64,000 nt of DNA from Tubulanus polymorphus (taxonomy: Eukaryota; Animalia; Nemertea): positions 10,652,275 to 10,716,274 of the forward strand of contig NC_134032.1 in assembly GCF_964204645.1 (NCBI RefSeq), written 5' to 3'. Both the position numbers and the translations under genes were made by a program. Each line of letters begins with the position of its first letter. Position 1 is the first letter of the stretch. This document shows positions 6,690 to 59,500 of this stretch, piece after piece. The notes beneath the pieces are model-generated. The model was not told where the DNA came from, ran no database searches, and worked only from the letters and a program-made list of their open reading frames with translations.

Positions 6690-33975
<27,286 letters not shown>

Positions 33976-44500: not shown

Positions 44501-47500
44501 TTCAAATATCAAATTATGCCATACCGATAAGTTATGCAGAAATATCTGAATGGGATAGTAATTCAATTTCTATAACGCCCATTTCACTGTGAAACATTAT
44601 ATTCAACGGCAATCAATTTTCAATTGGTAATATTACCCCCAGCCTGATAGTGAATTAAGCAGCAGGCATACAATCCTACTTAACTACCATCCCCCGGCAG
44701 GGATTCGAACCTGATTGGCATCGAGACTGCAACCAACAACACGAGACCCTGGCACTTAAGCCCGAGTGCGCATGTACAGCTCATACGATGTCACTATGAG
44801 CCAATCAGAAGTCGAGTTTTATTTCAGCCCGGGTTTTTACATCTACAGTTTTGCCGTGAAATTTGCCTCAGCCATTAGACAACGAGCAAACTGATTGGTG
44901 GCGCAAGTTAATGGGCGGCAAACCTGCGCATCTACATACGTGCGCCCCGGTCTAGCGTGGCAAGTTTCTCTCCGTGGCCGAGTCTAGTATGCCATCAGTT
45001 TCGAATCCATGTCGATGAGGGATGCAAAACTACTCAGGTGAGCCGCAGAATGAAAAAAAAAGAACCAAAACGTACTTGTTACAGAAAACCCCTTGGCTTG
45101 AACTCGGGTCTTTGATCATATTCCCGGCGACGCACGCAATGGTGTTCAGATTGGTCCCACTCATTACAGAAGTTGCCAAACACGACATCATTTTCATGCT
45201 TCCTTTCATTGCACAATTCGGATCTTGCACTAATTGATGAACTGAAAACATTTCCGGTAATCAATTTATTTCAATCTATTCTTAAATTCCGTGGAAATGA
45301 ACAATAAAATGACGAATTCCAAGTTGTTAATGCTCTTTCTCAACAATGGGGAACCCGAAACGCCGGCTATCCCACCAGGCGCGACGTCAAAATTATTTCA
45401 TTTTCAATTAACTTTGAACTGGAATTTTAGACTCACTAACCCATATATCATCACAGCACCCACCAACCATACAATACTTTCATTCTTCTACTGATATATA
45501 TCGGTATAGGTTTCATTGATAATTGATACATTTTAAGAGAAAAGTTCATTCAGTTTTGATCGAAATATAGAAGAAAATCGAACGCGGAAGACCCACTATC
45601 TACTAGCGACACCTGTTGGATCCTCGCCTGCCATACGGCAAAAGGTTGAAAGCCTGTTTTGGTCGATGGCGAGTGACGTCACTAGTACAAATTCCGAGCG
45701 GTTCGAATCCCACAATACGCCAAAATCACTACGGCCGCTCTGAGCGCACATCGCATTTCAACGTTGCCGTTTAATAATTGTAAAATAACTAATAATAGTT
45801 TAAGTTTTATAAGGGTTAGAAGTACATTGTATTTACTGCTAGTGTATGTATATATCATGTACGGTTGCGAGAAATCCCTGCCCTAGTTAAACAGTAAGTC
45901 CACTAAATCTTTAAATTTTAAGTTGTTTAATGAAACTATTATTGTTTTAAATTGTTAAAACTGCAAACTATGGTTGTCGAAGATGCACCTTCTTCACATC
46001 CTTTGAAATCCTGGATAGCATCGCTGTCGGCAAAGACCTTCAGGTCTGTCTTCAACGGCACATCGCTTTGGAACAAGCGACTACTGTGTTATCAAATCTG
46101 AACTAGGTAAAAAAATGTTCCCCAAAAATAAAGACAAGTAAACGGATTAATTTAAGGTTTGAATGTTTTTGTTTATTTGTTGGTTCAAATCGAACCCTCG
46201 TCATCCTGATCTCCATAAATCTAAGAAAAGTATTCGCACACTTAAAACAATAAAATACGAGCAATAAGCAATAACATCAGACTGGAGTAAGTAACTTTAC
46301 TTAATTCACAGATACAATCCTACACAAAACAATAGCTATTCAGTGGCGGATCCACCCCTCTATTTTTACCGATGTAGCCGCAAATCTATGCGTTACTGAG
46401 TAAAAACCGAATGAAATCTTTCTATTAAGTAATGCTCAGAATGCACCTGCTTGCATCTATTTTTCCAAAAAATTTTTAGGAAGGGTCTTCGCGTTATCGG
46501 TGCTTGCTCTGGAATGGCTTACAGCCATCTGTTGTTGCTTTCATTTGCCCCCCCCCCTTCAAAATGCTGGATCCGCCCCTGAGTGCAGACAAAATGATCG
46601 ACAAAGACATACAGAACTCTAAAACAACAGTTAACAATTTAAGCAACGATAGACAAAACAGATAGCTGATTACTTTACAAACCTGTTGTCAGAACCTTAA
46701 TTATTTTTACATGATATACAGAGGACTGTTAACAATTCAACCAATGAAATTGCGATAGAGATACAGAACATACAGCTTTAACAGTAAACAATGCAACCAA
46801 TGAAATTGCGATAGAGATACAGAACATACAGCTTTAACAGTAAACCATGCAACCAATGAATTGCGATTAACTAAGACCTACGAGCAATTATCAAGTTTGA
46901 TAATTGCTCGTAGCTAAGACATACAGGACAAACAGGACTAACTTAATTGCGATAGACATACAGGACATACAGGATTAACAGTAGACAATTCAACCAACGA
47001 ATTGCGATTAACTAAGACATACAGGACTAAACCACAGGACATACAGGACTAACAGTAGACAATTCAACAACCAATGAATTGCGATTAACTAAGACATACA
47101 GGACATACAGGACTAACTTAATTGCGATAGACATACAGGACTAACAGTAAACAATGCAACCAATGAATTGCGATCGCGATCACAAAGACATACAGGACAA
47201 AACCACAGGACATACAGGACTAACAGTAGACAATTCATTAACCAATGAATTGCGATTATTTAAGAAATACAGGACTAACTTAATTGCGATAGACATACAG
47301 GACATACAGGATTAACAGTAGACAATTCAACCAACGAATTGCGATTAACTAAGACATACAGGACTAAACCACAGGACATACAGGACTAACAGTAGACAAT
47401 TCAACAACCAATGAATTGCGATTAACTAAGACATACAGGACATACAGGACTAACTTAATTGCGATAGACATACAGGACTAACAGTAAACAATGCAACCAA

Positions 47501-50500
47501 TGAATTGCGATCGCGATCACAAAGACATACAGGACAAACAGGAATAAACCACAGTAAATTGCGATAAAAAAGACATACAGGACTAACTGCAGTAAATATA
47601 TAGGGCCTTAGGAATGCAAAATTCATTCATTTTGTCATTTGTAAACATTCCACAACTTATTTCATTATGTCATTTCCAGTTTTCAAAGGGAATTTTCTTA
47701 ACTTCAGATGCCTCGAGGACATAAACATATAGAAAGATCTGTCCCAAAAAAATGTCAAGTGTCTTTCATAGTGCAATGGGCCCTGGTTTCCACGTTTATA
47801 TATCACATATAAAATTCTACAGAAACAATCAATGAATAAGTGAAAATTTACGAATAACAAACAAGACATTCAAGCAGTTGAGTAAGTTAAAATGGGACCA
47901 ATCTATATATATTATATATGGATTATACAATTTAATCAGGGACAGCCTTGAACCGAGGTTGATGTGTCCATACACTCTCTTCATACACTCTCTGAACATG
48001 CATGTATGTATACTGCTGCCAATTGATGATAAGTCAAGGATGTTGAAGTTCTAGACATGGTCAGAATCATCCAGAGACATCGGCACGCATCACAATAACT
48101 GATGATTTTGCAGTAACCTGTAACATAAAAAATCAAGCGGTAATCTATTCACAAAATATATTTTCCTGAAAGAAAAAACCTGAAATAGAGCACTATAAAC
48201 ACCAGTGCATATACATCGCTTCTTAACCTTATATATAATCGAGTAAATATATAGGTGACTAAGTGACGGTCATTATAGGCTTCTACGTTCACCATGGGAA
48301 ATGAAAATATTTCTAACGTCAGGGATTCATTCGAAACCCGATCAATAATATTCTATACAAACTATTTAGGAAATCGGGTCACAATGAAAACAAAACCACC
48401 TGATATGTTCAGGAGGAGCCTCATTGATTGGAGCACATTTCCAATGATACCATCTATGGCAATTATCACATTCAATTGAGAATGTGGACTTTTTCTTAGG
48501 ATTAGCATTGCAGTTTTTGTGGCAGACAGGGCAGGTTTCAGCAACTAACCGAGAAGGGGTTTTTTCAACTTTTGATGACAAAAGATTATCTAGTTTCAAT
48601 TTTGCTAGGTTTTGGAGGCCTGCATTTCCAGGTTGATCTATAAGAATTTCTAATTCTTTTTCAGAATTGGAATTATTGATTTCTGTAATAGGAGAACTGT
48701 TGAGATAATCATCTCTATTATTATAATCGATTACAATAGATTTTTTCTTATGATGATTATGTTCAATACGAATGTGCTTTTGAAGGAATGTTTCACTTGC
48801 ATATGAATTAATAACCCCATCTGCCCAACAAATAGCACATGAGATAGGTTTCAAAGATGAATGAGAAGTGGATATGTGCCTATCTAGTTCCCTGCGACAT
48901 GAACAAAGATATGGAGGATTTATTTTGTCTTTAATACAAAAGGAACAGACAATACTTTTTTCAAATAAAACAGACTTCGAGTCATTTTTAACAACTGGTA
49001 TTGACTTAATATCTTTTGGTTTGGTATCTTTTGATTTTTTTGGTAAGGATGATTTATTCTGACTTAAAATATCTGCTGAAAATTCGATATCATTGCCAGG
49101 ATCTGGATCAGTGGAGTCTATGGTTTCAATTTCTGATATTTTAGCTTTTTTACCTAGTTTGATAGCAGCATTTTCAACCATAGCAGAAAAGGATACACCT
49201 CTGTTAGCAGGTCTAATTATCTTTCGCCCTCCGTGTCTTGCATTCTCAGCATCTTTAGGCATTGTAACCTTAGGACAGTAAGGGTCTATCACTTCAAGTT
49301 CAGGAAGGTTTATGGCAACCTGATTGTCCTTGATTGGACCCTCAGCACGCCTATGAGCCATATTGTGAGGTTGTCGTTTGGCAGGTCGTCCGCTTATTAA
49401 CTTAATTCCACAGTGGCTTTCATTATGTAAAATACTTAGAATGTGCCCTTTCCGAGCAGCATTGATATCATTCGAGCTAGCAATGTGGGAATGATCTTTT
49501 AACTTATCAATGAGGGTAGATGAAACAGAAATATTTTGTCGAGTAAAATTGTAAGTTGGCAGAGGCTCCACAATGTGGAATTTATATGCATCAATTAAAG
49601 CCTTCGTTGTGGTTATATTGTTTTTTTGGGCAAAACAGGCAAAAAGATGTTTGCAAAAATATGGTTGTCCAATCATTATAAAAGCTTCACAAGTACATAT
49701 ACCTAGTTTCAAATTGATTAAATGGCAATTACCATCTACGTATGAAAGACAATTTTCAGGAACGATTGTAATAACGTAATTGAATAAGATACGACTGGAT
49801 ATTGAATCTAAATTTCCTATGTACCTTCGGCATTTTTTTGAAATGTCATATGAATGTTCCTCGGATATTGATACTTTATCGGGGAATCTTTCTTCTAAAA
49901 CATCAAGCTGATTGAATGTATATTGAGTATCACCATTGAAAAAATTATCATTATCTTCTAACCTATTTAAGTTCTTTCGTGAAGAACTCTTCACAACAAA
50001 CCAATTAGTTTCTTCATCATATTTTAAAATCTCATTATTCTGTAATAAATCAAAGGCTCTTTTGCAACACTTTTCTATCTTTTCAAGGTGACGTATATTC
50101 TTAACTCGTTGGTCAAGTTGCTTAAATTGGAGATTGTTCATATTTGTCGCTTTGATCTCATCATTAAAAACATTTTCAAACAGTAATCGTACAAAAGATG
50201 ATATCAGTTTATTTAGGTGTCCACTTAAGTAGACATCATCTATTTGTTTGAATTTGCGCTCAGTAATATTATCAGTTAATAGCAAAGGGTTATTTCTGTT
50301 AGATTGGTCTGACTGATAAATTGATTCAGCATTGAATGCATCAGACCAAATTTGGGAATTAAACCAATTCTTCTTTAGGTAATCAATAAATAATGTTTTT
50401 GTATCTTGCGACATAAGGTCTAAAGAAATATCATTCTCAATAAAACTAATAAATGAATTGGCTATATCAGTTCTAGAGGAAGCATCCCATGATCTCATAA

Positions 50501-53500
50501 TGCATTTGAAACCAGTTTCTAGAGGCTTGCAAAATAAGCGAAGTTCTTGATTTTCATTCATGAAGCGACGAATACACTGCAGGACATGAAAATTACATAG
50601 TACTGATTTAAGATTATTGTCAGATGCTCCTTGCTTTAGACTTGCATCTTTATCATGTTGTACAAAAGGACAAAATCTAGATGTTGATGAACATGGCTTG
50701 ATTCTGAAAAAACCATTGCCATCATTAAATATATAGAATTCAGATGGATGATTACATTTTTCGTCTTTACATGGTGTATTGGCTAGAACTAACTGGATGG
50801 TAGTTGCATGAGTAGCCCCCCCTTCATCACTACTAATTGATGCAGCAGCAATACGTCCTTCATTTTTGTTGTCTGCAAAAGTTACAAATGAAGTTTTGAA
50901 TTTCCACGAATTGAAATCATGTTTCACGTCAATACCAATGACAGATTGTCCAAAGTTGGATAAATGTTCCAGAGAACGAGGATCAGAGAGAATAATGTGA
51001 TAATTACGTTTGAGTGTGGCATCCCCTCGTTGAAATAAAAGGACAGATTCATAGTTACCCTCTAATAATTTTTCAGTATTTCTCCAATCAGAACTTAGAA
51101 TAGGTATTTCGTCTTGAGATTTCATATGTAATTTTATCGAAGATTTATCAATATATTTCAATCTATTTGAAATTTGATCTAGGGTATGGTCATGACCGGC
51201 GCCATCATTTACATTTGATACATGAAGGTTATTGTGAGCATTGGTGGCAGAAAGAACCTTCATTGCTGTGGCTTTCATCATGACTCTATTTTCATCCCAT
51301 CTATCTCTAGTAGATAAATTAGGTCGCTTTTTAATTTGTAAAGGAATATTGTCATGATATTGACCATTAAGTGGTTTGCTGAAGATTCTCCACTTGGATA
51401 AATCAGTACTAAATAATACAAGTTTTGTTGCCCAATAACACATAAAATGAGGGTGAATTAATTTTTTTGGCTCAAACTGCTGCCTTAACTTCACAGGACG
51501 ATCACGTTTATTCTTCAGCTTATAGTTGTAACAGTTGGAACAAAGTGTTTCACCATCAGCATTTTTCCTCCATTTGTTAGACATGGTAATGGAGCAATGA
51601 ATACATTGTTTATCATTTAAAACAACGTCAATTTGACATGAGGGACAATTAGTGATGTTACTGGACATATTCAACTTTGAAAGATAATATCCACATGATG
51701 ATTTACAAACTGAAGACTTTGACGAACATTTTATGAGCATTTCTGCAGCCACAAATTGAGAAGTATCCTCAACAATTGGCTCAATAAATTCAAATTTATT
51801 ATCTAATCTATGGGTTTGCCAATTCTTTTTTAATGTTAAGGAAGCTTTCATCGTTGTCTGGTTACCAACAAATGAAGGCCGCACATTCTTATGCAGACGA
51901 ACTGTTTTTGTAAAATCAAAAGTGAATCTATCGAAATAATTTTTTGTGTCAGCACCAGTCATTACTTCCCCATTTTCAACCCATTCATCACTAAGTGGAT
52001 TCTGGTTGTTGAGGTATTTCTTGATAGTGTCAATGGCTACCTGGTCATTTGTACCTTGGTCTGTACAATGAAAACTTTTATACTTCGTCTTACTGCCAGT
52101 TGAATGAAAAGCAACTTCAAGATAATGCTTTCCTCTCCTGATGCGATGGGAGATAGTAGTTTTAGAACCATTAATATGGGAAGTTAATGGTTCAGCTGAA
52201 TTTAGAGTTAATGAGGATTGAGGATTCAAAATTGAGGATGTAGATTCAGGTGTAGATTCATTATTCGAAATTGGTGTAGATTCAGGTGTAGATTTAATAG
52301 TCAAAATTGGTGCAGATTCACTATTCGAAATTGGTGTAGATTCATTAGTCAAAATTGGTGCAGATTCACTATTCGAAATTGGTGTTGATTCAGGTGTTGA
52401 TTCATTAGTCAAAATTGGTGCAGATTCACTATTCGAAATTGGTGTTGATTCATTAGTCAAAATTGCTGCAGATTCATAATTCGAAATTGGTGTAGATTCA
52501 AGTGTTGATTCATTATTCAAAATTGGTGTAGATTTAGATTTGGCTGTAGTTAAGACTGATTTGCTTTTTTTAGGGGCAATATAAGAGTCTGACATCTTTA
52601 ATTCAGAACTAGCTAGTGTATTATTTGACTCAGTTGATCGTTTATGTCTCTGTCTGCGAGATAATCGTGATATCTTAGAGAAAGTAGTACTATTAGCAGT
52701 AGGTTGAGATGACTTTGAGAAGAGTTGAGTAATATCAATTAGATGTTTCATAAGCCAATTAATCAATATCAATCTAACAAAATCAGAATAGTTAGAAATG
52801 TTCTTAAGATAAGATAATTCATTGGGAGATGAAAATACACTTGAAATATCCTTTTCATAATAGGTTGCAATGCAAGCACCAATTAATGTAGCAGGGCCAC
52901 AGACAGATGAACATGATTGGAGTGGGTAATAACTAGTACAATTATTACTACATACATGCACTGAATTTTCAGTAACAAAATGAGGATCATGGAGGTGGAT
53001 ATAAACAGGATCAGGGCAATTCAAACCTTTCAAAACAGATCTTAAATGATTTTTAAATTCCCTTGGACAATCCCATGCTAGTGTATCAGCATAACACAGT
53101 TTGTTACTTTTTGGGTAAAAAACTGCTAGTGCATAATGATTGGCAACAACATGTCCATAAGAATTTAGAAATACGAAATCGTTTTGGGTGCCAACATGCA
53201 GGAAAAAAATTAGTTTATCACAACTTATGAGTGGATTAGGACCGAATCTTTTATATAAATTTGAAACATATTTCTTAGCATCAAATGTAAGTGGCATCAT
53301 AAATGCATGAATATTACAGTACTGTTCATTTATCATAGATGCAAAAGCATTTAACACAGATCCTTCAAACCATTTTTGATTAGTCATCGTCTGAAGTTCT
53401 GATACAGATACGCTATTATTATTACCAACTGGAAATTGTTGAGAGGGTTTTAAGGAAAAGAGCATATTTGAAAATGCTTGAATCTGTTCCCAATCGACTG

Positions 53501-56500
53501 AATCAGTGGGGCTTAAAGGCTTACTATTTACCCAAAGATTCATGGCAAAAAGATCTTGTTGTTTGGTTTTAGCATAATGTAAGAAAAGAAACCTATTAAT
53601 CTGATCAATAGAATAGCAGCCTGTATCGAGTCTCACATGGATATTAATGGAAGGGTCACGGACAATCCTTGACTGCATCTGTGCTTTTATGTCCTCCAAC
53701 TGATTTTTGTGGGGCATAGTGGGGGCATCATCAGCCAAATGACATGAATTAGACATGTCACAAATTCTGAATGACGTGACCTTTGATGGCATAACAGGAG
53801 GAATTTTCAAAAACTGATAGTCATTGAGGCACATTTCTGTTGGATTGTAACTAAAATTTCTTCTACATACATGTTCATCATCAGAATCATTCTCATCACT
53901 ATCATCAATTATGATTGGTTCGATACCTCCACCACCTGTGATACTTAGCTGTTTTTTGTTTTCCATCCAGCTATCTTCCTGCATCTTTAATCTTTCTATC
54001 CTTTCTTTCGAACTATCTTCCTGCATCTTTTCTGCTTCCTCTATCGTTCCTTCCGAGAAATTGTCACAAGCCGCGTCCTTTCCTTCTTCCTCCATTGTCC
54101 GCCTGAAATACACATTATCAACTCACTTTTTTTAGACATATGAATAGATAGAGTATGAAATTACCCATATAGGCCTAACATAAAACATGGGTATCTCTGA
54201 GTCATTTGCATTAAGTCATTTAGATTTGTAGGTACTAAATTAATTGAATTATGTTGTACTTACATTTCAGTATGGTTTAAACTAACATGGTCTAGAAGAT
54301 CTTTCCAATTGGTGAATTCAACTCCGCAAAAACATGTCGAGTCAGCAGGATCCGTCTGTGGATGAATAACCTAATGTGGAAGAGCACATTAATCTGTTTT
54401 TGCTTCAACATCTAAGCAAAAATAACAAAAATGAACCCGCATCTCGCAGAAAGGGCATCAAACTTACATGTTCCACTGACTTCCTTTTTCTGTTAAATCT
54501 TTTAGTATTGTGACAACTTCTATTGTAGCATCCCTGAATATGAAAACAAAGCTTTACAGCATAAATCATACCAATACCAATGAATTTCTATAATTTCATT
54601 TCGAGAAACATATTACTCACGTTCTTAGTCTGATAAAAAGGAGTAAATAATTGAGGCTTTAAACAAATAGCAACACCAGCCACATCAATTTTAGTCATGT
54701 ACTGGAAAAAAAAGACAGATTTGTGCATGCACAGCCTTTAGGTAATTGTGAAATAAAAGTGACCAAACTAATATTAAATCATAAGTTCTTGAGATGATAT
54801 GTACCTGGTCGAATGTGAAAAAGGCTCTTTGATCTTCACAACAGAATTGTTTCCTTGTATGATGCGCAACGTCAAAACTGCTATACTGGATTGAAGGATA
54901 CAAAAAACTGTTAAAATATATCTAACTTTATAAAGATAAATCACGTACAAATCACTTAGGAAAACAACTTTACCACTATTGTTGAATCATCCCATGCTCT
55001 TGCTTGATCATCCTTCAATTTGTTTTTTGCTATCAGCTATCAATATGATTCATTAATTCAATGCAAGGATTTTGAATAAAGTGGTTTCGTATTCAAGTTA
55101 TAAAAACTAATTGCAAATCATTCATTTTCTAGGATATCAATGCTAAATGATTACCTTTCGTCGATGGACTGCTCTACTTCTTTGCATCTTTTCAATCTCA
55201 TATGGAAAGTATTGAGGGCACCTGATTAAGAATCATTCATTATTTCCAGTACAATCATAAAATTTATGTAGTTTGCATACCTGGTAATTGGATAAAATAA
55301 TGCAATTCTACGTACATTTCATCTTCATTTTTCAATAGCAGTAGTTCCATTATCCTGTTATTTATGAACTGATTTCCCTTACGGCTGGGGTGTAACAAGT
55401 CAGTCCTAGATCACAAAATTTAGAAAAAAACAAGTTAGTTTAAATCGCGAAAAAATGCACATAACCTACTGGGCTTATTAAAATTAAACGATTACTTACG
55501 GTGAAAGGAGATCTCTTGAGAAGTGAAAATCAACGAACTTTACACCAAGTGTAAAGCATTCGCGGTGCAGCATTTCATTGTAATGAAATATTTTTGTGTC
55601 AGCATCGAAACTTTAAAAAAGAAAGAAATTTAAAAATCATTACATCGATCATAAATATAGTACTTCAAGAAAAATCTATTCTTGATACTTACTCATCACA
55701 TCGAGGAAAAAGAGCTGGTACAATGATGGTCCCAGTACATTTATAGAGCAACAATCGAATTAATTCAACGTGTCTTCGCAGAACAATCTCAAGCGGGACA
55801 TCACGCGTCATATCATTTGTTCCAACATGGACGATTAGTTGTTCCACATTCAGCATCTTCACCTTTTTCAATTCTGTAATATACAACTAATCAGTAACCC
55901 AATGAAAATGAACAATATAAATCAGTACTGAACCGAGAAATTACCTTCCATCAATGTTTCAATGGTTCCTCCGGGGCACACGATCCTTGTCCATTCAAAT
56001 AAGCCTACACCATCTAGCCCAGCATACTTTAAAATGCTGTCTGCTACGAGACCAATATGCTACAAAAAAGATTATTTGTCAGTCTCAGGCCAATATCACA
56101 GGGAGGTGTGAGAGAGCACACTGGTTACTGTAAGACCCTACTACATGCAAAAGAAGTGACACATATATGTATATCAATGTGATAGAATTGATTGAAAAAA
56201 TTGTGCATAATAGTAGCTAGTGCCCAAAAATAGAACACAGTGTTATTGAAGTGAAAATTTCTAAAATCCTCTGAAGCGGTGCTTATTTGGTAGCTACATG
56301 GGTATTCTAATTGAATAAGCATAAAGATAAGCGTGCACACACAGTAGCCTATGCATAAACAAGGGCCAGTTTCACCTTCACCTAAAAGTCCTGCAGTGTG
56401 AAGACTAACTTGTTCACCTAAACCACCTCTACCAGGCTGTGGAAGGCCTAACATCAGGCACTAAATTAAAAGATTCCTCTAAATCAAATTATCTATAAAC

Positions 56501-59500
56501 ATCCTCTTAATTGCAGGCAGACTGATTCAGGGAGGGGTGCAGCCCAAAATAGGGCATACATATCAGTATCATATATAATTAAAAATCAAAAGGGCACCAG
56601 ATCATCAGAAAACATAATACCTATATTTTGGAAGTAGGCCTACAGAGAACATGTTTTGGAATATAAGCTTTTTAAAAATACTTGTTGATATTTTTAATTT
56701 TTCCTTTAAATTTCATTGCGACTTAAAAGTTTTAAGGGGTCTACACCCCTGTATACTCTCCTGATCTGCCCCTGAATTGCCACTTAACAAAATTTCTCAG
56801 CTTAATTGTTGGCTAACTAGCTCAGTGAAACTGGGACCAGACCTAATGCATACACCCTCAGTGGCCAGGGCCAGGATTAAACAGTTAGGCTACGTATATA
56901 AATAAAGGAATGAAAAGTACTTATCCTGAAATTGGTTAGGCTATCTATCTGCAACAAGAAATACATTTTCATTGACTCTGAATACAGGGAACTACCATTC
57001 TTCTGTTTCGAGGCCTTAAAATTTATTGTTTATTTTTTGTTGCTGGATTTGGAATGGTTGTTGGAATATTTAAGGCCTAATGTCTATTTATTAATTGATG
57101 AGACCTGTTTTTCTGGGATATTTTGCTTACTTTTTGGGGTACATACCTCATTTATGTCTTAACAGAATGCCAAAAATCGCGGACAACAACTGAATATCTG
57201 ATATATTTCCAGTTCTGTACCAATTAGATGGATTGGCAAAAAGACTCCTTAAGTCCAGTTTAATGAGAGAGAAAATCCTCCATTTTGTCAAATTTCTTGG
57301 ATTTGAACATTGTTACCATGCCTACGCCACCCTGATTTAGTTGTTGAGACCCCACAAGAAAAATAACTTCATTTCGTAGGCATGGTGACAATGTAAAAAT
57401 TCAAGAAATTTCACAAAATGGAGGATTTTCTCTCTCATTCAATTGGACTTAAGGAGTCTTTTTGCCAATCCATCTAATTGGTACAGAACTGGAAATATAT
57501 CGGATATTCAGTTGTTGTCCGCGATTTTTGGCATTCTGTTAAGACATAAATGAGGTATGTACCCCAAAAAGTAAGCAAAATATCCAAGAAAAACAGGTCT
57601 CATCAATTAATAAATAGACATTAGTAGGTGGTAACTGTGTACGGGCAACATAGGCCTATACCCAGTGGCATGGCAATGGCATGCCACTGGGTACCCACTA
57701 CTGCACTATAGTATACTGCCTACGGCTACTGCGACTGGTGGTTCGGTTGGCAGAAATTACTTGTTAACATGGGGGGGGGGGGGAGGGGGGAAGTAAGCGT
57801 GGATGAAGACAAATTAATTTAGCCGAGTAAGTAGCAAGCAAGTAAAGTAGTGGCAGTACAGTAGGCCTAGCGACAATGTGAGTGTGGTGGTAACGTGGCC
57901 GTGGTGGCAATAACAAGACTCCAAAACTGGCAAAAGCCAAAATTAAAAAGCCCTGCCGCCGCGCGGTCGCGACGCCTCGCCTGCACCACCGTGTACGATC
58001 CTCGCGGCGTTCACCAGTGTTACCCAGTGAGTTTTTTATAATCTTGCAATCTACCTCTTTTTTCAAACCAATATTCCCACCAACTGGTCCGGAGACAAGC
58101 TTAACACGTTCGGAAAACATGATTCACAATCTTTTAATCAACAGCCAGCAAGAATACACTTGACAGAAAATTCAAATTCAGCGGTTAACCGTTAAAAGTG
58201 AGTTGTTTAGCTGTGGGAGTAACAAAAAGGCGATCTTGATGACGTCACTAGCCATCGACCAAAACAGGCTTTCAACCTTTTGCTGCCATACGTGTAAAGA
58301 TCGAGTACCCATTATATAATTCATTATTCGAGTACATATCGATGCTTAATGAAAAAAATTATCTTTTGAATCTATCGATTCCAAAATGATTTCTCACGTG
58401 GATCGATCGCCCTGAATTGTTTTGTTCCCAATCCCAATCGAAATGTACTTACGTTGGGCCACATCGGGTAACATTTTACAATTGACGTCGATGAGCGGCG
58501 GTAGGCTAGGCGCAAATTCACTCTCAATTGTCAAATATGGACGGATTGTGGGTTGGGATAATTGCCGTAAGAGGCAGTAAGCGTGCTCGTTTGAGCAGAC
58601 AGTCCGGTATCTTCGAAACCATGACCATCAGTTTATTCCTAAAGAACAGTTATCATCGAATGGAAATTACAAATACAAATGATAATGATGATGCGACGAT
58701 GACGATAATGAAAATGCTAATAATGATAATAACAATAATAATAACGAATAAAACGATAAAGAATATTGATGATAATGATGACGATGATGATAATGTCACT
58801 TATGATGATACATCCTCCCCCGGCAGGGATTCGAACCTTGCCACGGTAAGAAACCCTGCCACACTAGACCGAGTGCGCAGCTACATGCGCAGCTTAGATG
58901 ATGTCATTGTTATGCAATGTTCAAAGTTGTCTGACAATAGAAAAACTCTTCTTGAAGTATTATATAGAAATTTTCCGGAATGCAGGAGGTCCTCAAGTGA
59001 GTGTAAATTCAGAATCATTATGTCAACTGTACAGATGGCGTATAGCCTTGGGAAATTTATAAAGGCTTCTTGCTAGATTCAGCTATGTGTATGTATATGA
59101 CATGATATGACGTTGTTTACTGAATCAGATTTTTTACTTGTACATAGCCTACTCATATGAACCGTCTCGGACTATTGAATCCTAGTCATAGTATAGAGAA
59201 ACGAGTGTATCTGCCTATCTTATCATGTTTGTACATAGTGCTATAAATTTTATCTGGTTTTGATATATACTATACATGTATTCTTCTTTGTTTTCCTCTT
59301 TATTGTAAAAAGCCAATAATGTCATTTGTATATTACGGTGCAATAAAGATTAAATTGAATTGAATTGAATTGAATTATTAGCCAATCACATATCCCGTTT
59401 TATTAAAGCCCGGGTTTCCCATTTACAGTTCTTCTGTGAAATGAAATTCACCTCAGCGATTATACAACGAGCAATCTGATTGGTGTCGCAGGTTTTCGCG

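Follow-up and report, generated by a model that had tools for sequence, protein, structure and literature searches.

A family of giant Mutator-like transposons, recently active in the nemertean Tubulanus polymorphus

We examined a 64,000-nucleotide stretch of the genome of Tubulanus polymorphus (Nemertea; G000:C8:10652275-10716274, from an assembly of 268 Mb in 77 contigs), which we will call the window; positions are counted from its first nucleotide. Positions 45638-58283 are very probably a single, structurally intact member of a young family of autonomous Mutator-like elements (MULEs). This kind of element is already known: it is a cut-and-paste transposon of the Mutator superfamily. What is unusual is its size and the set of domains in its transposase. 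This giant MULE family has been recently active in T. polymorphus, and the copy in the window is an apparently intact new member of it.

An inverted-repeat search and direct reading identified two terminal inverted repeats (TIRs) of 44 nucleotides, which are complementary at 43 of 44 positions (98%). Reading both ends directly, we also found that an exact 9-bp target-site duplication (TSD), TGCCATACG, flanks both TIRs. The lone mismatch between the TIRs (G/T at position 34; GGCGAG versus GGCTAG) is identical in all 11 of the copies that we read, so it is an ancestral feature of the family and is uninformative about the age of the window copy. The inner end of each TIR (45674-45681 and 58240-58247) is a CRE/ATF-like palindrome, TGACGTCA.

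The TIR is found throughout the genome. When we searched the whole assembly with its outer 32 nucleotides, we found 65 matches, 58 of them exact. A reversed control had no matches, so these hits are not due to chance. By position and orientation, the ends form about 26 pairs on 11 contigs. About 13 of the pairs span 9.7-17 kb; there are also three of 6,864-6,865 bp, four of about 4.77-4.79 kb, several of 5.5-7.6 kb, and one of 2,094 bp. A perfect 9-bp TSD is present in 15 of the 19 pairs with readable flanks, and all 15 differ in sequence. The other four pairs include one with a TSD that is offset by one base, two with degraded TSDs (7/9 and 6/9), and one with a decayed end.

We read 11 large copies whole (the window copy and ten others). 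Eight of the 13 shorter copies were judged on the terminal 1.5 kb at each end, and the remainder were judged on their coordinates and on a genome search with the DNA of the transposase core. The young copies share 99.7-99.9% of the window copy's sequence over 8-11 kb; in three older copies the identity falls to 94-98%. The entire frame of 1918 codons is kept in 6 of the 11 large copies. Across 5,754 coding bases, these six intact copies have just 11 variable sites (by codon, 3 synonymous and 7 non-synonymous changes), and the coding sequences of three of the six are identical. Also, the whole 1.86-kb core DNA is retained at 14 loci, with at least 99% identity at 13 of them.

The shortest copy (2,094 bp; C4:1004860-1006953) is a classic internal-deletion derivative. 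It consists of positions 1-1150, 11161-11442, and 11985-12646 of the element, is 99% identical to it, and has a perfect TSD. The internal-deletion derivatives range from 2.1 to 7.6 kb and carry TSDs of their own, and the 6,864-6,865-bp and ~4.77-4.79-kb forms are each found at different loci. The many paired copies, their distinct TSDs, and these derivatives refute the idea of a single fixed, domesticated copy and show that both full-length and defective members transposed recently.

A first-pass annotation, which was made from the letters of the window alone, had described this element as an intact and probably recent 12.6-kb MULE. The features that it listed (TIRs that match at 43 of 44 positions, an exact TSD, an uninterrupted 5.7-kb exon, and putative catalytic D, D, CNFH, and E residues) are all in place. 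It had also proposed a genome-wide search with the TIR, and the ~26 pairs and the non-autonomous derivatives are what this search returned; a single fixed copy that is orthologous across species, which would have suggested domestication, is not what we see on these 11 contigs. Its claim of recency holds, but on other grounds: the recency of the family rests on the 99.7-99.9% identity between copies and the scarcity of variation in their coding sequence (11 sites among 5,754 bases), and not on the similarity of the two TIRs, whose mismatch is ancestral. The size needs a correction as well. The full span is 12.6 kb, but a nested miniature inverted-repeat transposable element (MITE) accounts for 542 bp of this, which leaves about 12.1 kb for the element itself.

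Two other loci and a group of diverged sequences are worth describing. The copy at C2:19705419-19722669 (L035-L037) is 17,251 bp long; its frame is intact, and its TSD is perfect. Close to the 5' end of its gene (at element coordinate ~12,358) it contains an additional ~5.5 kb, which is presumably another nested element. At C13:7-12109, a full-length element begins at base 7 of its contig, and its core DNA is 100% identical; this contig may be an unplaced haplotig with an insertion allele. Finally, this genome also contains a second, diverged relative of the transposase core, with 64-66% DNA identity over ~1.2 kb (C39:51974-53109, C6:15725024-15726254, C7:10435013-10436244, and C6:15287386-15288057).

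The core of the transposase is Mutator-type. The element has the operational features of a MULE: a 9-bp TSD, TIRs, a catalytic triad of two aspartates and a glutamate (DDE) along with a C(2)H motif and a conserved tryptophan, a SWIM zinc finger, and homology to other MULEs. The feature that it lacks is a direct match to the MULE family in Pfam (PF10551). The TSDs of MULEs are 8-11 bp long, and typically 9 bp. We took the definition of the catalytic motifs from PMC5499845: a DDE triad whose second D is followed by (C/D)(2)H, together with a conserved tryptophan. The homology is seen by way of fungal proteins. In a phmmer search of 1.84 billion proteins with residues 880-1500 of the open reading frame (ORF), we found a hit to a protein from a Glomeromycotina family (P0029; E = 1.5e-19). 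Members of this fungal family score above Pfam's cut-off of 27.6 bits for MULE (P0192 with 36.5 bits and P0182 with 27.9 bits). Using hhalign, the profile of the animal family aligns with the profile of the fungal family over 505 columns (probability 99.9%, E = 5e-34).

When we scanned 29 relatives singly against Pfam (E ≤ 0.1), 12 matched ZSWIM1-3_RNaseH-like, 9 matched MULE, and 5 matched SWIM, and none of the 29 matched KDZ, CxC, hAT, P, or another transposase family at this threshold. The neighbors of the protein in the ESM Atlas are MULE/SWIM clusters. The top structural match of the core is ISCth4, from the IS256 family (Z = 11.8 over 249 residues; Foldseek probability 1.00). The assignment to the Mutator superfamily in the first-pass annotation, which had been based on the TSD, the C(2)H motif, and the SWIM finger, is upheld by the phmmer hit, the profile alignment, and the Pfam matches of the relatives; the structural match is supportive.

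In the numbering of the ORF, the catalytic residues are D1062 (50928-50930), D1154 (50652-50654), and E1285 (50259-50261). The CNFH motif is at residues 1173-1176 (50586-50597), and W1256, the conserved tryptophan, lies between the second aspartate and the glutamate. In the alignment of the 29-protein family, the near-invariant positions include G181/D183 (D1062), D275/K276 (D1154), L293/C294/H297 (the C(2)H motif), W377 (W1256), and the four SWIM ligands. E1285 lies within a conserved TNNxTER(K/R)F motif. The AlphaFold model of the core has a mean predicted local distance difference test score (pLDDT) of 77.6, with values of 85-97 in the catalytic region.

The transposase gene is on the minus strand. 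The ORF at 48366-54113 has 1918 open codons without a stop and encodes 1915 amino acids if read from a GTG. This GTG is not the true start, since at least nine other coding exons precede the 5.7-kb ORF, which is the final one of 10 or more. Our protein search also found a 100%-identical match to a protein of 1,995 amino acids, which is in a cluster with T. polymorphus proteins from RefSeq. RefSeq's "uncharacterized protein LOC141914437" has isoforms of 2,196 amino acids (X1) and 1,995 amino acids (X2), and the products of LOC141906750 and LOC141900736 are identical. The RefSeq model adds 281 residues via nine upstream coding exons. We searched for these exons individually using tblastn, with the database protein P0142 standing in for the whole spliced model, and all nine map to the window copy (54263-55880) with one D/N change. 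All of the coding exons of the window copy are open, and they differ from the RefSeq model by this D/N change and one other residue. The first-pass annotation had called the element intron-rich, and the nine upstream exons from the models of its sister copies bear this out.

Some of the upstream exons resemble SGNH/GDSL hydrolases. Block III (GTND) is at 55692-55880, a middle exon is at 55499-55609, and block V (DLLHP) is at 55315-55410. Pfam's Lipase_GDSL_2 matches one exon with E = 0.019 and matches isoform X1 with E = 2.5e-6 (28.6 bits, short of the cut-off of 32.9). An open frame on the minus strand at 55925-56059 encodes a sequence like block I/II (ADS...PGG). The annotated start methionine is inside this frame, so the modelled esterase is missing its nucleophile block, unless the frame continues into an unannotated exon farther upstream.

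The N-terminal part of the 5.7-kb exon contains a block (residues ~130-470 of the ORF) that is conserved in relatives from Patella, a stomatopod, crabs, and metagenomes. Here, too, is a domain that resembles the cysteine proteases Ulp1 and SENP. The family profile for this domain matches yeast Ulp1 (PDB 1euv; E = 1.4e-5). Its histidine and aspartate are invariant, the cysteine is nearly invariant, and a QxCxSxCG motif is conserved. The structural model of the domain (pLDDT 78.6) is similar to Ulp1 and SENP2 according to Foldseek (E = 6e-8, probability 1.00, TM score 0.65-0.70). Pfam's PF02902 did not match the window protein at E = 10, whether searched with the whole ORF or with four pieces of it. 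Judging by the model, an Ulp1/SENP fold with a His-Asp-(Gln)-Cys set is present, and we predict that the domain is a protease. The coordinates of these and the other features are given in the table.

Table. Features of the Tubulanus element in the window, by position
Feature	Position	Strand	Basis or details
Left TSD copy, TGCCATACG	45629-45637		Read directly; identical to 58284-58292
TIR, 3' side of the gene, 44 nt	45638-45681	+	Outer 32 nt exact in 58 genomic ends; inner end TGACGTCA
Subterminal minisatellite, ~1 kb, between the stop codon and the 3' TIR	46596-47600	+	Units of ~56, 77, and 166-171 bp; GACATACAGGAC and TGCGAT[AT][AG] recurrent
Last coding exon, 5.7 kb, including the stop codon (48366-48368)	48366-54101	-	Open frame to 54113; sister RefSeq models enter at ~54101 (RTMEEEGK...)
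C-terminal PHD finger, ORF 1861-1911	48381-48533	-	Pfam PF00628, E = 3e-5, 24.2 bits versus cut-off of 24
Two C2H2-like zinc-finger motifs, ORF 1723-1785	48759-48947	-	Read in translation; sole Pfam match zf-H2C2_2, E = 1.5
SWIM zinc finger, CTCEAFIMIGQPYFCKH, CxC..CxH, ORF 1473-1489	49647-49697	-	C, C, C, H near-invariant; Pfam SWIM in five family members
RNase H-like DDE catalytic region with alpha-helical insertion	50109-51089	-	Family alignment, AlphaFold 2 model, structure matches
GATA-type zinc finger, ORF 837-861, directly upstream of the core	51531-51605	-	Pfam GATA weak (E = 0.002); family profile versus PDB GATA-3, E = 1.1e-13
Coding tandem repeat, 24/48/108-nt units; Ser/Thr/Pro-rich linker after the Ulp1-like block	52249-52534	-	Translation read
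Ulp1/SENP-like cysteine-protease domain (clan CE, C48)	52713-53726	-	H326, D343, Q399, C401/C405
Upstream coding exon with C2H2-like motif	54263-54370	-	Matches residues 250-285 of RefSeq isoform X1 at 100% identity
Five short upstream coding exons (~55149-55220, 54974-55036, 54805-54885, 54621-54701, 54468-54533)	54465-55220	-	tblastn, P0142
SGNH/GDSL-hydrolase-like exons	55315-56059	-	Blocks read; Pfam Lipase_GDSL_2; RefSeq mapping
Nested foldback MITE, 542 bp, ~250-nt arms, TA target duplication	57080-57621		Inverted-repeat search; junctions read
TIR, 5' side of the gene, 44 nt	58240-58283	-	Inverted-repeat search, genome TIR search, copy comparison
Right TSD copy, TGCCATACG	58284-58292		Read directly

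At the nested MITE, the filled site reads GGCCTA/ATGTC...GACAT/TAGTAGG, and sister copies read GGCCTAGTAGG; comparing the filled and MITE-free junctions reveals the TA duplication. The MITE has no counterpart in copies C2a, C2b, C2c, C6a, C6b, and others, and since most of the sister copies lack it, the ancestral element did not include it. We found at least 340 candidates for this MITE across the genome, and of the 40 that we scored, most are 99-100% identical. Their number and near-identity suggest that a MITE of the Tc1/mariner type (Stowaway-like) has multiplied in a burst very recently. The window copy, copies C1a and C5a, and derivatives of 5.94 kb and 7.57 kb all carry the MITE at an identical position. 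This shared position at different loci implies that the MITE-bearing lineage continued to transpose.

A comparison of the copies shows that the number of repeats in the subterminal minisatellite varies. In the window copy, the minisatellite contains 13 TGCGAT[AT][AG] motifs on the same strand, with GATA or GATT cores, between 46751 and 47567. Our hypothesis is that the GATA-type finger of the transposase may bind to these motifs.

Several observations weigh against our view that the window contains an intact copy of an active MULE. The Pfam models for MULE (PF10551) and SWIM do not match the window protein, either as the whole ORF or as four pieces, even at E = 10. In the core region nothing in Pfam matches at E = 10, and the whole protein matches PHD and, weakly, GATA. 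The assignment to the superfamily therefore relies on transitive and profile evidence. The structural evidence is supportive rather than decisive, because the hAT transposase Hermes (Z = 10.1) is only weakly separated from ISCth4 (Z = 11.8), and no eukaryotic MULE structure in PDB matches. Sixteen paired copies, including C12, C13, and the 13 shorter ones, were judged on their ends, coordinates, or core DNA. Support for expression of the gene comes from the RefSeq models only. The empty site (CCTCGCCTGCCATACG/TGTAAAG) is absent from this assembly (searched as a 29-mer with up to 3 mismatches), which is uninformative in a single-haplotype assembly. And the window copy's own activity is a prediction, since it carries the MITE in its 5' region, as do C1a and C5a, whose frames are broken; sequence by itself cannot demonstrate activity.

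The most plausible of the alternatives accepts that the family is active and doubts the window copy itself. This copy could be a passenger: the MITE, which lies on the 5' side of its coding exons, or another regulatory lesion would silence its gene, and it would move only by means of transposase from the MITE-free copies. We think this rather unlikely. Of the six intact copies, five lack the MITE, and the frames are broken in the other two full-size copies that carry it among those read (C1a and C5a). Against this, the coding exons of the window copy are open and match the RefSeq model except for two residues. Also, MITE-bearing copies or derivatives are present at at least five loci with their own TSDs, so the MITE is no block to mobility in cis. 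A different question is whether the element belongs to the Rehavkus group proper, outside of the canonical MULE radiation. We consider this improbable, even though the element has all of the listed hallmarks of Rehavkus (its TSD is 9 bp, its TIR falls within 26-400 bp, it has one gene and a PHD finger, a minisatellite precedes the 3' TIR, and its length is in the range of ~10-18 kb; Dupeyron 2019). By eye, the catalytic motifs are different: Rehavkus has hhhDATGS, VVTDFSxA, C(A/C)AHF, and (N/S)xxxExxF, with ~220 residues between the second aspartate and the glutamate, and the Tubulanus family has GIDxKxDF, HDK, LCNFH, and TNNxTERKF, with 131 residues. Furthermore, the nearest relatives by sequence are MULEs that match PF10551, and no protein from Tribolium, Helobdella, Nasonia, or Drosophila is among the named relatives.

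Two further ideas fare much worse. The second-best structural match, to Hermes, together with the occurrence of the C(2)H motif and the tryptophan in both hAT elements and MULEs (PMC5499845), might suggest another DDE superfamily with long TSDs, namely hAT, P, or KDZ/Zisupton. This is very unlikely, as the TSD is 9 bp and not 8, there are 131 residues between the second aspartate and the glutamate without the long insertion of hAT, and a SWIM finger follows the core. The family's Pfam matches are exclusively to MULE, ZSWIM1-3_RNaseH-like, and SWIM, and the hhalign probability of 99.9% is to a PF10551-positive family. KDZ/Zisupton in particular, which the first-pass annotation had singled out, is rejected: none of the 29 relatives has a KDZ or CxC match in Pfam (E ≤ 0.1), and the TSD of KDZ is 8 bp. 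We give even less credence to the idea of a host gene domesticated from a Mutator transposase, as for FAR1/FHY3 or the ZSWIM genes, that happens to lie between old repeats. NCBI does annotate copies as multi-exon genes for "uncharacterized" proteins, with isoforms, and the neighbors in the ESM Atlas include ZSWIM1/3-like clusters. But near-identical copies are at unrelated loci with the same TIRs, their own 9-bp TSDs, and flanks that are not shared, so these are not segmental duplications. Deletion derivatives exist, and the substitutions between copies look neutral (3 synonymous to 7 non-synonymous). Copy number and TSDs contradict domestication, and we reject it.

If our reading of an autonomous MULE is correct, then its transposition can be sketched by analogy to Muta1 (PMC5499845). 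The transposase would bind the 44-bp TIRs and would excise the element via double-strand breaks, leaving hairpins on the flanking DNA. The 3'-OH ends would then be joined to a target that is cut with a 9-bp stagger, and repair of this stagger would yield the 9-bp TSD. Incomplete repair of the gap could give rise to the internal-deletion derivatives, which the intact copies would mobilize in trans. What the Ulp1-like, PHD, GATA, and esterase modules contribute is a matter of conjecture. We speculate that the Ulp1-like protease removes SUMO or a ubiquitin-like protein from its conjugates, that the PHD finger reads histone tails, and that the subterminal minisatellite is an array of binding sites for the transposase.

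We tentatively propose that this element is the founding, still mobile member of an unnamed clade of giant MULEs from Nemertea, Mollusca, and Crustacea; we hold this as one candidate reading and not as an established grouping. The clade would be characterized by an Ulp1-like domain, a GATA-type finger (in place of WRKY or FLYWCH), and a DDE-SWIM core in one polypeptide, with a PHD finger in at least Tubulanus and Patella, and with an SGNH esterase spliced in frame in Tubulanus. If so, this would be the largest Mutator transposase described, and a cut-and-paste element would have independently assembled the combination of esterase and PHD that is seen in CR1-like long interspersed nuclear elements. 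To our knowledge, active MULEs are rare in animals, and biochemistry has been done for Muta1 only; we also know of almost no described mobile elements from Nemertea. The Tubulanus family supplies several apparently intact autonomous copies, along with a natural 2.1-kb non-autonomous partner that has perfect ends. Its Ulp1/GATA/PHD set and possible esterase offer a testable system for studying the accessory enzymatic and chromatin-reading domains of DNA transposons. There are implications for annotation as well. About 26 loci can be flagged as copies of a transposon, and at least three of these are full-length RefSeq gene models (LOC141914437, LOC141906750, and LOC141900736). Because the transposase escapes the Pfam model for MULE, it is annotated as an "uncharacterized protein," and such elements are probably undercounted in the genomes of spiralians and crustaceans.

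ISCth4 transposes by copy-out/paste-in. It is the best structural match to the Tubulanus core (PDB 6xgx and 6xg8), but at just 12% sequence identity, and it lacks the accessory domains of the eukaryotic protein. Its family, IS256, comprises prokaryotic kin of the MULEs (PMC7780238).

Among animal elements, Muta1 from Aedes aegypti, and MULEs more generally, share with the Tubulanus element the 9-bp TSD, the TIRs, the DDE residues with C(2)H and tryptophan, the TNNxxE motif, the downstream SWIM finger, and internal-deletion derivatives (PMC5499845). The Tubulanus transposase (2,196 amino acids) is about four times as long as that of Muta1 (504 amino acids), and its core escapes PF10551. MULEs usually carry DNA-binding domains of the WRKY or FLYWCH type (PMC1702500), and Muta1 has a FLYWCH finger (PMC5499845). 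The Tubulanus element has a GATA-type finger in the place that is usual for these domains. A 2026 survey of arthropods found MULEs of up to 9,972 bp with ORFs of up to 1,136 amino acids (PMC13359780). By this yardstick the Tubulanus family is large, yet Rehavkus-3_TC is longer, at 18.5 kb.

Rehavkus elements are in Repbase from Arthropoda and Annelida. They are described as having TSDs of 9 bp and TIRs of 26-400 bp, encoding a PHD finger, and carrying a minisatellite ahead of the 3' TIR; for instance, Rehavkus-1_HR is 10,679 bp long with 26-bp TIRs (Dupeyron 2019). The layout of the Tubulanus element matches this published description point for point. Their DDE motifs, compared by eye only, are DATGS, VVTDFS, and CAAHF in Rehavkus (with ~220 residues from the second aspartate to the glutamate) versus GIDVKHDF, HDK, and CNFH in Tubulanus (131 residues).

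SGNH esterases are known from the ORF1 proteins of retrotransposons without long terminal repeats (PMC3905857) and from capture by Helitrons (PMC4021074); we found no published report of an SGNH esterase in a MULE gene. Mutator elements with Ulp1 domains include the KI-MULEs of plants and, in Repbase, MuDR elements of hydra and lancelet, and combinations of Ulp1 and PHD are found in Mutator and Ginger1 transposases (Bao et al. 2010, PMC2836005). Compared to the descriptions of these elements, the Ulp1-like domain of the Tubulanus element is N-terminal and is in one polypeptide with the DDE core.

Among the close relatives are giant proteins, without names as elements, from other invertebrates. 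Using phmmer, we found homologs in Patella caerulea (44% identity, 1,863 amino acids), Oratosquilla oratoria, Scylla paramamosain, and Portunus trituberculatus, as well as metagenomic proteins. The giant homologs from these four genera are 1,630-1,870 amino acids long and are 31-44% identical over the 620-residue core. SGNH-like N-terminal exons were not detected in the giant homologs of Patella, Oratosquilla, Scylla, and Portunus, and a PHD finger was detected only in the proteins from Patella, where the family is multi-copy. All of them share the order of the Ulp1-like domain, GATA finger, DDE residues, and SWIM finger with the Tubulanus protein, so the pairing of an Ulp1-like domain with a DDE core is conserved across Nemertea, Mollusca, and Crustacea.

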